This document shows positions 7,110 to 22,891 of a stretch of DNA of 64,000 bases, in pieces. The translations under genes and the position numbers were made by a program. Each line of letters begins with the position of its first letter. Positions within the stretch are counted from its first letter, which is position 1. The notes beneath the pieces are model-generated. The model worked only from the letters and a program-made list of their open reading frames with translations. It made no database searches and was not told the DNA's origin. This DNA is from Podarcis tiliguerta (taxonomy: Eukaryota). The DNA lies in the NCBI GenBank assembly GCA_965153285.1, contig OZ229117.1; one strand, given 5' to 3'.

Positions 7110-11072
<3,963 letters not shown>

Positions 11073-15570: not shown

Positions 15571-18500
15571 TCACAAGAGCCCCCGATTCTTCATCGTCCG
15601 CCATCGGTCCTTGATCGCCACAGGAGTGCGGTTCTTAAAGGGGAATGCCTGGGAAATGGCTTTCCACCTCCCTTCCCCAAACTTCTTCACGCCTTCCTTA
15701 ATCCACTGAGACTCCTCTGAAGTCCAGATCTAGAAAGAAGAGGGCATAGGCTCTCATGAGCAACCATCAAGTGCTGCAAGACTTGCCCCTTGTCCCCATG
15801 ACAGAACGACAGATACCCCAGCCTCTGGAGATGGTTCCATGGCTGTTGCTAACAGAGGATTGCCACTGACATGGAATGTAGCTCAGTAACTCACAGCAGG
15901 CAAATATCCAGCCCATATTTCAAGACATTAAACCCAACTTGGTGGAACACTTAGTCCTCCTTCTGCAATATGTGGGTAATAAAAATAAAATTCAGCCACC
16001 TTACAGTGTGGTTGAAGAGGCCATCAAAGATAGCAGATATAATGTGCTGAGATTGCCCAGGCTTCTTTGAAACACCTGGGTATCCAAGACCCTTGATTAT
16101 TTAATTAATTAGGAGAGGCCCCTTAGTCCAGTGGTTGAATATGCAGAAGATCCCAGCTTCAAACCTGTGACATCTCCAGGTAGAGCCGCGAAAGAGACAC
16201 CTGTACTGAAACCCTGTAGCACAGACAATACTGAGCTAGACGGACCAGGATTCAGCATATGGCAGCTTTCTATGTTCCCATTAATGGGGATTTCATCAGT
16301 TCTTTCATTTGGGAGAGGGGGTCCTCATCAACTGGCCTCCATTTAGAGGGGTCTTGTCAAGGCAGGCCTATTTCTCCCCACTGGAGTGCTCAGCTCCAGA
16401 CTGGGTGTAGGCTTGGTTACCTTCTTTTTCGAACCAAAGAGGGAAGTGTTGATGCTGCTGGTGCCTTCTTCCTTCGATTCTGAAACACAAATTCATTTAC
16501 AAACTTTATGGGATGCATGATTTTACCACTACTACACCTCATCAGAAATCCAGGGTAGTGGTCAAATTCCACCCAGCCCTTGGCATGATGTGTAGAGTCA
16601 ACTACTGATGGAACTATGTTAAGGGTTGCCATAAATCCAGGGCATCCCAGACATGTCCTCTTTTGGGGGGCCAACATGCCCAATCCAGGGGGATTTTTTA
16701 CATTTTAAAGGACATGTCTGGGGTTGTAGGGAGGGGTTATTTATTCATTTATTGCTTGGCCAACTCTACACACCACTGCTGCCACCAGCCCAAGCTGGGA
16801 AAAGAAGAATGTGGGTGCACTTCCTTCCCTGGCTCAGGCTGTCCTCTTTTTTGCTCTTCAAGATCTGGCAACCCTAAACTATGTGGCAAACAGTCATCCA
16901 TGTTCACTCACAGTTGCCATCTCATTCTAGCACAGTTCACAAAATTGATCACTTTGTTTTGCAAGATGCTTACCAGGTTTTGAGAGTTTTGCCTTTAGCT
17001 AGTCTGGGCATTGCCTAAGCAAGCCTCCTGAAGGACCGCACTTAACAGTTCTCTTTGCCCGCCATGCTGGCAATGTTTTTCCCCATATCATTGTGATGTC
17101 ACTGGGTAATGCAATGTGAGAAGCCATCAAAACTGCACAGGTGCTTTAATTAGAAGAGTGCATGGAGCTACAATTGAGCATCATGCAGAGCAAGAAGCCA
17201 GTGCTGCTGCTGTGCACTTGCGAGTAGGCAGTCCAAATATTTTACTTTTCTGATCCAAGAGCTGTGCCCCCAAATCCTTACTGTGTACAGGATACTAGCT
17301 GCTTCACCAGGCTCCAATTAACTTCTCAATTCTATGGAGCAGACAATGGGAACTCAAAGCTCCTGGCCTGACATTCAGACACTCACAGAGGAGAGCCTCA
17401 GCTGCTTGGCAGCTTTGCTATTTTGAGAGTAGCTTCGCTATATTTCTGCCAAAGCCCTTTGCGGCAAAGAACCCTTGATCATGCCGAGCACCCAAAACCA
17501 AGCAGACAGATTCAAACATTTGCTGCTTACCAAAAAGTTCATCCTCATCACTCCAGACCTCCTTTTCTTCATCCTGATTTAAACAAATTAGTCTCCTCTT
17601 TGCTAATCTGAATGGAACAGAGAAACACAAGTAAGGAAAGACCTACCCCACAAGGAGATGAGACAGGACTGAGCTGCATCAATTAATGTCACACACAACC
17701 AGGATTATGGAGATGATGGGTTAAGTATCAGACAAGGAGCGAGGTTAATTTGTCCCAGCAAACACACCACTGCAGAGACCTATGGCAGCTTAAATATGAG
17801 CAAATAGCTGGTGGCAAAAACACAAACCCTTATCCTTGGCACAGACGGAAGGGGGGGGGGGGAGAGAAATAACATTTTCTACCTTCTGTCTGGCAACTGA
17901 AGCTAACATTCCAGGCATCTGACAAAGCAGAGTCCGGCACAGGTGTTTCTGCCACAATAAATCTGTTTAGCAATCTTTAATGGGGCCAGAGACCGTATTG
18001 TCAATTCTGCTATCTTTGCAATCTGAGTAATAAAAATTAAGACAAGGTATGTGAACCAGATTCTCTTGCCACCTGCTTCTACTAGCTGGGGGAGAAGATG
18101 CACAGCGATGCAACCCTACCACTGCAAACCACCTTTGCCTTCCTTGGAGCTTCTGGGCTGAGGCCTTCTAATGGATTCCTTGCAAAGGTGAAAGTTGCAC
18201 CAAATGCCTCATGCTATGCCGGTTCCCCAGCAGACCCCACAGCAGTCATGGCCTCTTACCTGGGATATCGGGAGGTATTATCAGGCTGGGTGGGTATTTG
18301 GGGCTGTGCAGGCCGGACAACCAAAGTTGCCACAGGCCTCTTGGATGGAACTCGGGAGGAACTCGGGGGGTTCCAGCTCTCTGACCCCATAACCAGTGTG
18401 CTTATGGACACTGAGCGTTCACTGGGGTGCGGCCTGGAGGCAGCACGGTTCTTCTCCGTTTGGCACTTGGCTGCGTGGAAATCAGAAGCCAAACATGGCT

Positions 18501-21500
18501 TGGGGAAAGTCCAGTCCAACTTGTCCAGTTTTGAAAACTCTTCATCTGCATCTGGGGAATTGGACAGGATCTTGAAAGCATCCCTCAGAGTAGAAAACCC
18601 ATACGAGCCCATCCTCTTAGGCGAGCATCTGCAAAATAAAGAAACATCAGAAGGTTGCTCCACAAGTTTTGCCAATTTATGTTGCTGACCTCACCCCCAA
18701 GACCTTGCTCCCCTGGCAGCAGGTGCAATTTGAGTCTGAGTGCTGAGAGCCAGAAGTTGTATGGCAAAACAGCTGCCCAGCATGGCAAAGGGAGTCAAAA
18801 CTGTAAGAGGCCATAGGCTGCTAACCTGTCAGAGTCACTGGAAACTGCTGAGACAGTGGCAACAGCAACCACAGCAGGCTCTGCAGCTCCACTGGTTTCT
18901 TCTTCTGGCTTTGAAGCTGCCTGGCACTCATCAACCACTTTAGCAAGCTCCAAAACAGCTCCCTTTGCCTCCATCAAAGGCCTTGCAACTGTCTCACGGC
19001 CTCCCTCCAGAGAATGTGGCTGTTCTTCCACTGTATTTCTAGGCCCTGCCTCAGGCCAGGGCTCTTCCAAAGTCTCATCAGATCTTCCCACAGATTCAGG
19101 TTTATCTGCTGCCGCCACCTCTGAGGTTTCTTTCACCATTTCCTCCTTGCTGGCCATTTCCAAAGGATTGAGCCTGGTCTCTATCTGATCATCCAAATCC
19201 CTTTTTGCCATCTTAAACAGAGAATGTGAACACAGTTACTAGAGAACACTTCTCAACTTTATTTTCTTTTTTCTAGTTCTATACAGCAGCCATGCCCAAG
19301 CTGGTGCCCTGAAGATGCTTTACCTACAATTCCCCTAAGCCCCAGTCAGCACAGCCTCATGATGCTGGAGCTGTTGGGAATTGCTAGTCCAAAACATTGT
19401 CAGGTTACAAGCTTGATATATGTCAAATGTGACATTGGAGCCCTGTGCTGTTCTGCTGTGGGGTACTTTGCTCTTTACAAAAATATTTTCCAAACACATA
19501 ATAGTTTGGCCAGGGAGGCTTCTGTCTTAAGCCTCAGGTGCTGAATGTACTTTTTTGATCACAGTGTTTAGACGGCAAGAGCTGCTGTGGCAATGTGGGT
19601 GATATTCAAGTGCTCCAGCAACACACAGAAATATATGAAGAAAGCAAGCTGCCTTATGCCAAGCCAGACCAATGGTTCATATAGTTTCCTATCACCACAC
19701 ATTGAGTGACAGCGGCTCTCCGGGGTTTCAAGCAGGGGACATTCCCAGTCCTACCTAGAGATGCCAGGGATTGAACTTGGGACCTTCTGCATGCAAAGCA
19801 GATGTTCGACTACTAAGCTGTGCTCCCACTACAACATCCCACATCTCAATCAAGCAGCACTCCATACCCTTGCTTACCTCTAAGAGAAAGGGCTCAGAGT
19901 CACTCAAGCAGCTTTCTAAATACAGAAGTATTCTCTGCTGGAAAGCTTTATAGGAAAAGTTCCAGATGGCTGGATGAGCGAAGTTTTTTTCTCGGATGAT
20001 GCTCTGGAACATCGACCTCATTTTCTAAGCAAGGGGAAATGTTTTTCAGTACTTGCAAGCAAATTGCAGCACAGGGCAGAGATAAAAGCAATTTTTGCAG
20101 TCATTAGAAGTTTAAACAAAACAAGCCAAACCACTAGAGCAGTCTAGGTAATGTCACAAATGCATGAAAGTAATGATGACTAGAGATGTGGACCACAATC
20201 TGTAGCAACATGTGCTGCTTGTAGATGCAATTTTTCTCACTGCGTGAGGGGGACAATAAACTTTCAAGTATTTAAAGAACTCACTGAATTTGAGAATGTG
20301 GGAAGGACAAACCATGACTCTGCTTTGCAGTGAAATGACCCTATAAGAGGCACATTTCAACAACAACCTCGACATGAACTCATACCTGCTGAAAGCTCAC
20401 CTGGGAACTTGGGTCCTTTGATATGTGTTTCCTCAGGATCTTGCTGGCTTGTTCATATTCTTTGTTTTTTAGACAGGTTATAACAGCCTGGAGGAGAAAG
20501 ACAAAATAATGGTTTGCAAGGAAGACTTTGGGGGAATGTTCCTAATCTTAAGAAGATACTGTTCGAGAGATATCCCTCTGGCAATTTTCTAGATCTGCTT
20601 CACATTTTCAACCCAGTGTGTTTTATTGTGTAATATTAGACCACTTATTAAAGAATAAAAAAAAATTCAAGTAAGGCAAGTTACTTAAAAGTCTGTAGGC
20701 TAACAACATTGAAATAATGTATGCCTCAGGAGAGTCAAGAAGCCAGCTTTTCCTGGATTGCCCCAGAAGGAAACAAGTTTTCAAAACATGCTGAGTTCCA
20801 ATAAACTCAGGCACTTCTGAGGAGACATTTCCCTTTCATTTCATCCCAACATATAGGAATCGTGCCTCCTTGCTTCTATTAACTTTTGTGAACTTATTTA
20901 AAAGTCCAATTTAAGTATGGAGAAAAATAGGCAAGAGTTAATCCTGGCATTGAATTAGCACCTTAATTAAACCCTTTCCTAAATATACTGCGTTTTGAAA
21001 CTCAAGACAGCTGTCCTCATACTAACTAGGCTGAGAAACAGTAATCAGTGCCCACAGAAGAGGAAATGCTAACACTTACTGCTTCCTTTATTTTATTTCT
21101 TATTTCTTCTATTATATCAATGCCTATGTCCAATTCATTCTTCATCTTATCCAAAAGAACAAGGGCATATTCAAGAGGTGTTAACTTGGTCTTGGTATCA
21201 ATGGTCCAGTCTTCTTCAATCCTAGACAGAAGCTGGATAATCCGCAGCTGAATGCCAATGCGTTTCTCTAGCACTAGGGGCCTTGCAAGCACAGCTGGAG
21301 AAGAACAAGACAGTCAAAACAGCTACTAAGCAAAATCAGATAGTTCAGCAAACCAGGTGTAACGAGGCTTGGGCCAGGGCACCAAAGCCCTGTCCCATAT
21401 CTTGTATCCCTGGCCATATACAGACAGACAGCTTCATCCCAACATGCCCTTTGGCTCAGGAGTCACTTTGCATTTGCTTGTTTTTGTGTGTGTGATCTAC

Positions 21501-22891
21501 AATATCCTTTAGTATCTATATATACACAAACACACACATTTTTTTTAGTGTCTTAATCTTTGTGGTAAGAGATCTTGCTGGAGCTCCCGTTTTGTGGGGC
21601 AGAAATGCAGTATGTACAGATTTTATTTATAGACACACAGAAGTAATTACTGTAAGAAAATGAATGGTAAAGTACAGTAGTTGAGATTCTTAGAACTACA
21701 CTCCAAAGGTGCTAGGCCATTCCTAACGGTTGGCTTCTGGAAACCATCACACTCAACTACAGCCCACACCCAAAACTCATTAAACTCAATCTCTTAATAC
21801 ACACATCAACATTCTCCAATTTGAAATAGATTTCAAGAGGGCTCTGAAATTTTCAGGTACTTAGGAGGCTAAAGGCAGCCGGGCTTGCGGGGGGGCAGGC
21901 GGGGCAGGGATCCTGACCATCTGTGATGGGCTTTAGGAAGCATTCATTTAAGGGGGCATGTATGTATCCTAACCATCTTCCTGAGAATCACAGCTGGCTG
22001 TTTTCAGACCGACCTTCTGAGTTCTGTGCTGTTGGTTAGTTGTACTTTGTGCATTTTCTTTAAAAATCATTATTGGATGAATTTCCCCCTAAACTGATTT
22101 TAGAACTTTGAATTTATTGTTATTCACGCTTTTATACTGTATTTTATGCTGTTTTTTTGTTGTATCACAATTGTTTTAAATTTGTTAGCCACCCTGAGCC
22201 CAGTTTTCTGAACCGGGAAGGGCGGGGTATAAATAAAAATTTATTATTATTTCCCTTAATTTCTAAAGGCAAATGACAAACGTTCCAGGGACACAGATTG
22301 TATTATATTTTAAGTTGCTTTAGGTTCATTTTTTCTTAAATGAAAACACCTAATGACTATTAACCTAGACAGCATCTTAAAAAGTAGAGACATCACCTTG
22401 CCAACAAAGGTCCGTATAGTAAAAGCTATGGTTTTCCCAGTAGTGATGTATGGAAGTGAGAGCTGGACCATAAAGAAGGCTGATCACCGAAGAATTGATG
22501 CTTTTGAATTATGGTGCTGGAGGAGAGTGGCTGAGGAAACCCAGCCAGATGGGCGGCGTATAACTAATAAAATTATTATTAGTTATTTACACTCACGTTC
22601 CTTAGCAGGAAATACCTTTACAGTTATTTAACCCAGCGAGAATGTTCCCCAAATGCCCCTTTCGTAAAACAAACTGGTCTCCCCACCGTATATGACGTCC
22701 CGCAGCTGGCGAAAGTCCTGGCTGCGGCCGGCCCGGAAAGCCTGAAGGGCCCGGTGGGCGTAGAAGAGGATGGCCCACCGGTTCACCGCCTCCTCCAAGG
22801 CCTTTTCGCGAGCCTCCGCGGCTCCTTCGGGCGACGCAGCAAGAGACGCTCCACGGCCACCGCCCGCCATCTTCCCTCTCCCGCGCGCCAT
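15571..22891 (-). CDS. TERF2: Telomeric repeat-binding factor 2, complete, about 567 aa, 9 coding exons
   Basis: Exons 22891-22687, 21294-21080, 20487-20401, 20024-19878, 19211-18826, 18628-18260, 17607-17531, 16479-16421 and 15729-15571 (1704 nt, open). TRFH (LEEAVNRW...LTPLE...[10 protein letters not shown]), RAP1-binding motif (LRDAFKILS...FSKLDKLD), TIN2 motif (SISTLVM), iDDR-like [13 protein letters not shown], Myb/telobox IKDRWRTMK. Alternative ATG at 22870. Confidence 0.96.
16111..16280 (+). mobile_element. tRNA-derived SINE (Squam3-like)
   Basis: Degenerate A/B-box head, GACAATACTGAGCTAGACGGACCA body and ATATGGCAGCTTTCTATGTTCC tail. Confidence 0.75.
19640..19830 (-). mobile_element. 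tRNA-derived SINE (Squam3-like)
   Basis: Minus strand reads CAGCTTAGTAG (A box)...TTTGCATGCAGAAGGTCCCAAGTTCAATCCCTGGCATCTC (B box)...ATAAGGCAGCTT tail. Confidence 0.85.
22010..22250 (+). mobile_element. 3' end of an L2/CR1-group LINE
   Basis: T-rich tract ending GTTAGCCACCCTGAG...GAAGGGCGGGGTATAAATAAAAATTTATTATTAT. Similar ends occur at about 1955-2015, 27530-27820 and 36530-36765. Confidence 0.55.
22360..22527 (+). mobile_element. Bov-B (RTE-clade LINE) internal fragment in TERF2 intron 1
   Basis: Translates [55 protein letters not shown], the Bov-B ORF C-terminal region as recalled. Confidence 0.92.

Follow-up and report, generated by a model that had tools for sequence, protein, structure and literature searches.

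Introduction

Phe120 of the shelterin protein TRF2 underpins the standard model of leading-end telomere processing, and TRF2-F120A is the standard allele for uncoupling Apollo from shelterin. In mammals the residue is carried by loop L34, which lies between helices 3 and 4 of the TRFH domain and serves as the lid of the peptide-docking groove. The gene considered here is the TERF2 gene of the lizard Podarcis tiliguerta, which lies on the minus strand of a 64,000-nucleotide (nt) stretch of contig OZ229117.1 (assembly GCA_965153285.1), referred to below as the window. Its docking loop is four residues shorter than that of human TRF2 and has Ile in place of Phe120. Residues are numbered throughout as in human TRF2 (500-amino-acid numbering).

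The mammalian docking site is well described. In human and mouse TRF2, F120A abolishes binding of Apollo, SLX4 and MCPH1 (PMC4334113, PMC7672075, PMC10497418), and in mouse cells it blocks Apollo recruitment and leads to leading-end telomere fusions (PMC10497418). The crystal structure of TRF2 with MCPH1 places the motif Tyr in the L101/R102 cleft with hydrogen bonds to S98 and E94, the motif Leu in a pocket between helices 2 and 3, and the motif Pro in a stack on F120, with further backbone or side-chain bonds to R109 and D81 (PMC7672075). According to passages of the main survey of shelterin evolution, Apollo and PNUTS are the only clients whose Y/H-x-L-x-P motif occurs amniote-wide, and the motifs of SLX4, MCPH1 and NBS1 arose only within mammals (haplorrhines, primates, placentals) (PMC8653790). 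Only docking of Apollo and PNUTS is therefore at stake in reptiles, and SLX4 and MCPH1 drop out of the clients that an earlier note on this DNA had listed for this loop. In its main text the survey regards the Phe site as something vertebrates have, with no mention of a squamate exception (PMC8653790), and full-text literature searches on TRF2/TERF2 with squamates returned no prior description of one.

A Remodelled Docking Loop

The loop is encoded by a 215-nt exon (21294..21080) that corresponds to ancestral exons 2 and 3 fused into one. Its splice sites can be read directly, with an acceptor AG at 21296-21295 and a donor GT at 21079-21078 (GTAAGT from 21079), and the frame between them is open. 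The exon codes for TRFH helix 3, loop L34 and helix 4 (human residues 85-159). In translation, E112 (GAA, 21214-21212) is followed immediately by D117 (GAC, 21211-21209), W118 (TGG, 21208-21206), T119 (ACC, 21205-21203), Ile at the position of F120 (ATT, 21202-21200) and D121 (GAT, 21199-21197). The remodelled codons thus span 21197..21211, and the 12 nt for human GENL are missing at the junction 21211..21212.

Two alignments agree on this placement. With the exon as query against all PDB chains, phmmer matches only the human TRF2 TRFH domain (3bua, 1h6p, 4m7c and 3bu8; E about 8e-8 to 1e-7). It opens one four-residue gap following SRIEE, facing human GENL, and sets lizard D-W-T-I-D opposite human D-C-S-F-D. 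A MAFFT alignment of 55 vertebrate TRFH domains puts the gap at the identical place.

A canonical Phe120-type docking site combines an aromatic Phe at position 120, a 14-residue L34 loop starting G-E-N-L, and a Tyr cleft with its polar contacts. The window encodes Ile at 120 and a 10-residue loop without GENL. Of the cleft and contact residues, D81, E94, L101, R102 and R109 are present and S98 is Gly. The position of Q84 is occupied by Tyr (TAC, 22690-22688) at the end of exon 1, which closes with RDVIY and one further base. The deletion of GENL, the Ile at 21200-21202 and the Tyr at position 84, all claimed in the earlier note, are borne out by these translations and, for the loop, by both alignments. 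Its picture of a remodelled site lacked two points that shape what follows, namely the Trp at position 118, invariant in squamates, and the retention of D81, E94, L101, R102 and R109.

Distribution of the Short Loop

To survey the distribution of the loop, the exon was run with HMMER against 1.84 billion representative proteins and the sources of the hits were looked up; turtle and Podarcis TRF2 served as seeds for two further, word-indexed searches. The 10-residue loop, which reads [D/N]-W-x-[I/V/T]-[D/N] between SR[I/L]EE and [T/M]P[L/F]E, is shared by all 26 squamate species in the survey, and every short-loop protein among the amniote search results is from a squamate. They comprise lacertids, skinks (Tiliqua, Lerista), a cordylid (Hemicordylus), a teiid (Salvator), an amphisbaenian (Rhineura), anguimorphs (Elgaria, Varanus), iguanians (Anolis, Sceloporus, Pogona, Phrynosoma), five geckos, and snakes ranging over boas, pythons, vipers, colubrids and one elapid. 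Trp118 is invariant in the 26 squamate rows, and position 120 is Ile in 20 of them, Thr in four geckos and Val in two.

More than 110 TRF2 sequences from other amniotes, by contrast, carry the 14-residue loop, G-E/Q-N-L-D/E-C-S/T-F. These come from turtles, crocodilians, palaeognath and neognath birds, tuatara (two models), platypus, a marsupial and placentals. In teleosts, 47 of 54 TRF2 (terfa) sequences carry a loop of 14 residues, of the form G-[E/D]-x-L-x-x-x-[F/Y], and nearly all of these have F or Y. A few teleost terfa loops are shortened (database proteins P0256 and P0249, and two with GERLDVSSESI); one is without the G-x-x-L part but has Phe, and two are without Phe. By their sequences, these changes of loop length in fishes may be independent of the squamate one.

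A maximum-likelihood tree of the TRFH domain, built without the loop columns, unites the squamates in one clade with a Shimodaira-Hasegawa-like approximate likelihood ratio test (SH-aLRT) value of 100. No internal amniote branch is longer than the stem of that clade, at 0.42 changes per site; fast evolution thus extends to the squamate TRFH domain as a whole and is not confined to the loop. In the same tree, tuatara TRF2 is placed with turtles and archosaurs and not with squamates.

Since the short loop is confined to squamates and the long loop is found in tuatara, the other amniotes and most teleosts, the change arose on the squamate stem. On the evidence of the sampled loops, the long aromatic loop is ancestral, and Squamata share three derived traits (GENL deleted, C118W and Phe120 lost), all acquired after the split from the tuatara lineage and before the divergence of geckos. 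This interval lies very roughly 250-200 million years ago. The alternative polarity, in which the short loop is the general non-mammalian state and mammals gained an insertion, was rejected: the short-loop sources are all squamates and the turtle has the long loop. The alignment across squamates, tuatara, turtles and birds that the earlier note had proposed for dating the change thus yields a date on the squamate stem. What that note saw as a feature of this lineage is indeed a remodelling relative to human TRF2, but one that belongs to the whole of Squamata. The replacement of acidic MEAE by basic TKTK, likewise correct here, is a lacertid detail; other squamates have TETE, SETE, ADTE and similar sequences.

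Groove Residues and Predicted Structure

The groove was compared between 26 squamate and 26 other amniote TRFH domains (human residues 45-245). D81, L101, R102 and R109 are each present in 26 of 26 squamates and E94 in 24; S98 varies in squamates and also in birds. A difference was counted as fixed when a position at least 90% conserved outside squamates was replaced in at least 90% of squamates. By this measure M83, Q84, M104, I139, F143, V157, L196 and T238 are replaced, G113-L116 are deleted, C118 has become an invariant Trp, and F120 has become Ile, Thr or Val. Replacement of K93 is borderline and passes in one of two row sets. Gln84 gives way to Tyr, Asn or Thr, and Met83 and Met104 to Ile, Leu or Val. 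Across the domain there are 69 positions at which other amniotes never vary, and 26 of them are changed or relaxed in squamates. The loop itself, with an entropy of 0.64 against a domain average of 0.93, is better conserved in squamates than the domain as a whole.

An AlphaFold2 model was computed from an alignment of 47 sequences for TRF2 of P. muralis, a protein 97% identical to that encoded here, and tuatara TRF2 was modelled as well. The TRFH domain of the P. muralis model is confident. Its top PDB matches are human TRF2 TRFH complexes, with template-modelling (TM) scores of 0.87-0.91, root-mean-square deviations (rmsd) of 1.8-2.5 Å and about 53% identity; the best single match is a TRF2 TRFH domain (TM 0.91, rmsd 1.9 Å). 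TRF1 follows behind TRF2, at TM about 0.75-0.82 and 24-28% identity. In the models, then, the TRFH fold is intact in squamates. Helix 3 of the Podarcis model ends at the first Glu of EE, a 12-residue loop follows, and helix 4 begins from Pro; the local confidence score (pLDDT) of the loop block is about 89. In the tuatara model, helix 3 ends at the Gly of GENL and a 14-residue loop runs to the same helix 4 start at Pro, with pLDDT below 50 at C-T-F. The squamate loop is thus predicted to be both shorter and more ordered.

Loss of Four Residues and of an Intron

Intron positions in other reptiles were deduced from exon-skipping isoforms and genomic open reading frame (ORF) products. Two sea-turtle isoforms (P0053 and P0054) join exon 1, ending RDVMQ, in frame directly to DCTFD. 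The ancestral intron 2 therefore lay right after GENL, in phase 1, with the final 12 nt of exon 2 coding for GENL. A Phrynosoma model (P0014) joins RDVIY to DWTID. In a snake-like ORF (P0016), unrelated pyrimidine-rich sequence upstream leads directly to DW...KEA, with intron-like (GTA-type) sequence after it, and a gecko-like ORF (P0017) has the same pattern, with an exon starting at DW. By these deduced junctions, intron 2 persists in geckos, snakes and iguanians, where exon 2 stops 12 nt short of the ancestral end. In the window, the site of the former phase 1 intron lies between 21211 and 21210, where the exons are contiguous and no intron is present.

This arrangement suggests two separate events: loss of GENL on the squamate stem and, later, in the lineage leading to Podarcis, an intron loss that would have been precise relative to the squamate mRNA. 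The 12 nt would have gone from the 3' end of exon 2 either through a small deletion or through use of an in-frame donor further upstream. A donor shift would need little, since Gly-Glu codons of the form GGT-GAR make G|GTGAR, a potential in-frame donor 12 nt upstream. A compensating shift of the acceptor was considered and rejected; turtles and squamates share the starting point of exon 3, which is in phase 1 in both.

Two database models are irregular at this junction. An Anolis carolinensis protein from MetaClust (P0180) has four extra residues, D-E-N-K, between EE and DW compared with P0009 and P0025, and these resemble the ancestral G-E-N-L; they may come from a second splice site at a distance of 12 nt or from homology-based model building. 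In Ensembl models of Varanus (P0010 and P0160), GECGEP replaces DWTIDTK (EE-GECGEP-TEQ), and the NCBI model (P0151) has the normal squamate loop. The Varanus sequence would be consistent with read-through of a G|GTGAR donor. Both oddities may be splice-site artefacts at the junction.

Possible Consequences for Client Docking

The preferred reading, held at about even confidence, is that docking has been rewired and not lost, with Trp118 as a relocated hydrophobic platform. The squamate groove would still dock short linear motifs, and the platform on which the motif Pro stacks would have moved from Phe120 to the invariant Trp118, together with Ile or Val at 120, on a shorter and more ordered loop. 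The affinity or specificity for clients would have changed without being abolished. The invariance of Trp118 and the retention of D81, E94, L101, R102 and R109, which between them hold the Tyr, the backbone and the fourth residue of the motif, argue for a site that was rebuilt rather than one that is dead. Teleosts usually have a large hydrophobic residue at position 118, which suggests a common orientation for residues 118 and 120. Fixed squamate events are also concentrated near the site, with seven of the 12 in residues 81-121 against 18 of the 87 unchanged conserved columns (odds ratio 5.4, one-sided Fisher p 0.01), in an interval chosen after seeing the data; for residues 81-132, p is 0.064.

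Besides that choice of interval, several points weigh against rewired docking. The placement of Trp118 in the space of Phe120 is suggested by sequence periodicity, not coordinates. Since F120A alone abolishes client binding in mammals, loss of the Phe could by analogy be fatal to canonical docking. M83, Q84, E123 and S131 never vary in other amniotes and vary freely in squamates, which looks like relaxed constraint, and geckos have Thr at 120. With a looser criterion, the concentration of events near the site loses significance, as a test for relaxed constraint near the groove gave p 0.13-0.30.

These same free positions and the gecko Thr speak for the strongest rival, a real if lesser possibility, in which the squamate stem lineage lost the canonical docking of Y-x-L-x-P motifs on the TRFH domain. 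Apollo, and PNUTS with it, would then be recruited by another contact or not by TRF2, and leading-end telomeres would be processed by another route. The rival also draws on the long TRFH stem branch, on the loss of four residues from a loop that hydrogen-bonds the peptide, and on the record of position 120 itself, where Phe is otherwise invariant in amniotes and nearly so in teleosts. It is harder to square with D81, E94, R102, R109 and the Tyr-cleft residue L101, which stay invariant across the squamate radiation, and with an invariant Trp118 in a new loop that is conserved above the domain average. Ile or Val can still pack on proline, and the Apollo motif is reported as amniote-wide in passages of the shelterin survey (PMC8653790).

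Taken to its limit, loss of docking would make squamates, about 11,000 species, a natural F120-null clade whose TRF2 has been unable to dock Y-x-L-x-P clients for some 200 million years. This is doubtful. Were it true, some other contact would bring Apollo to leading ends, or a different nuclease route would rebuild the 3' overhang, with the iDDR/MRN balance perhaps re-tuned.

Functional neutrality is unlikely. It holds that Ile or Val at 120 and the retained groove bind the same clients about as well, and that the loop was shortened incidentally, through a splice-site shift or small deletion that a fast-evolving lineage tolerated. The squamate TRFH domain is indeed fast throughout, as the 26 of 69 changed or relaxed positions attest, its fold is unchanged and most known contact residues are kept. 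Set against this are more than 400 million years of F/Y conservation and of fixed loop length in most other sampled jawed vertebrates, and the simultaneous fixation and later invariance of C118W, which look compensatory. An assembly error or mis-called exon that dropped 12 nt from this genome, a possibility the earlier note had raised against itself, is hardly worth entertaining, since the same short loop is present in independent assemblies and in RefSeq/Ensembl models of 26 squamate species, two other Podarcis genomes among them, and the exon has an open reading frame and canonical splice sites.

Squamate TRF2 presents, across an entire order, a naturally occurring alternative to the usual layout of a much-studied docking site, and squamates as a group may recruit telomere-processing factors differently. 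A whole order without Phe120, while tuatara and all other sampled amniotes keep it, is a ready-made evolutionary experiment. If the site tolerates a different aromatic geometry, with Trp118 on a shorter loop, the rules of motif recognition would be redefined, which would matter for the design of TRFH inhibitors. If Apollo recruitment proves dispensable or is achieved otherwise, the result would bear on how essential the link between TRF2 and Apollo is.

Gene Structure and Neighbourhood

The remaining TERF2 exons lie on both sides of the fused exon. Exon 1 (22687..22891) runs from the start codon to the first base of codon 85, ends at a donor GT (22686-22685), and holds D81 (22699-22697) as well as Tyr84. 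Searches with tblastn of lacertid TRF2 proteins locate two further TRFH exons (about 20487-20401 and about 20030-19866), a hinge exon (19220-18807), an exon that binds RAP1 and TIN2 (18630-18259), the iDDR exon (17609-17532), a short exon (16480-16418) and the Myb exon (15729-15574). These exons are 95-99% identical to TRF2 of P. muralis and P. lilfordi, 88-93% to Lacerta and 82-93% to Zootoca, and the 215-nt exon alone is 97-99% identical to TRF2 of the two Podarcis species. Two database proteins (P0001 and P0147, 97-99% identical) served as full-length stand-ins.

The RAP1, TIN2, iDDR-like and Myb motifs had been described from the sequence as retained, and so they are. The RAP1-binding motif that marks TRF2 against TRF1 (Pfam PF16772, TERF2_RBM) is matched with an E value of 2.1e-16 at 18259-18630, and the Myb/SANT telomeric DNA-binding domain (PF00249) with 6.8e-15 at 15577-15729. 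The TIN2-binding stretch aligns to lacertid TRF2 proteins. At 17609-17532 the window aligns at 96-100% to the Podarcis TRF2 iDDR exon, and the acidic core around a Trp is visible in the ORF; the definition of the motif follows a passage of the shelterin survey (PMC8653790). Single TRFH exons, which are too short, gave no Pfam match to TRFH (PF08558), a domain that the full-length lacertid proteins do carry, and nothing in Pfam matched the ORFs at 10506-11024 and in the hinge.

The neighbourhood of TERF2 and TMED6, which characterises TRF2 orthologues, is conserved. TMED6-like exons (8846-7113) lie directly downstream of TERF2 on the same strand and are 59-70% identical to the C-terminal part of a Sceloporus protein (P0021). 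This adjacency explains why NCBI named that TMED6/TERF2 read-through model TMED6. By its RAP1-binding motif, iDDR, Myb domain and synteny, the gene in the window is an intact TERF2.

Lacertids also have a diverged second, TRF2-like gene on another chromosome, one of roughly 47-51 Mb (P0004 in Zootoca, P0202 in Lacerta agilis and P0002 in P. lilfordi). The Zootoca copy has TRFH and Myb domains, no match to the RAP1-binding motif, and the loop D-F-T-I-D. An aromatic residue at 118 is kept in these paralogues, as Phe in Zootoca and Trp in P. lilfordi. The P. lilfordi fragment is colinear with the fused exon of the window and continues into its following intron, which suggests a DNA-level duplication after the intron was lost.

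Comparison with Known Docking Sites

The closest described systems are the human and mouse TRF2 TRFH domains, known in complex with Apollo (PDB 3BUA), SLX4 (4M7C), NBS1 (5WQD) and MCPH1 (7C5D). The lizard orthologue shares with them the all-helical fold, the contact residues D81, E94, L101, R102 and R109, and a loop placed correspondingly between helices 3 and 4. It differs in a loop four residues shorter, in Ile120 (Val or Thr in other squamates) and in Trp118 for Cys, and any binding of Y-x-L-x-P peptides by it is putative.

The engineered F120A allele resembles squamate TRF2 in being without the Phe that stacks on the motif proline. The resemblance ends there: F120A is a single truncating substitution in a mammalian loop, whereas the squamate variant is natural, ancient and clade-wide, has a large aliphatic residue at 120 in most species, a neighbouring Trp and a short loop, and is presumably compensated. 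The paralogous TRF1 TRFH domain, whose Phe142 site docks the F-x-L-x-P motif of TIN2 (PDB 3BQO), has an equivalent loop and aromatic platform. According to a passage of the shelterin survey, changes in this loop set client specificity between TRF1 and TRF2 (PMC8653790). The lizard model matches TRF1 less well than it does TRF2.

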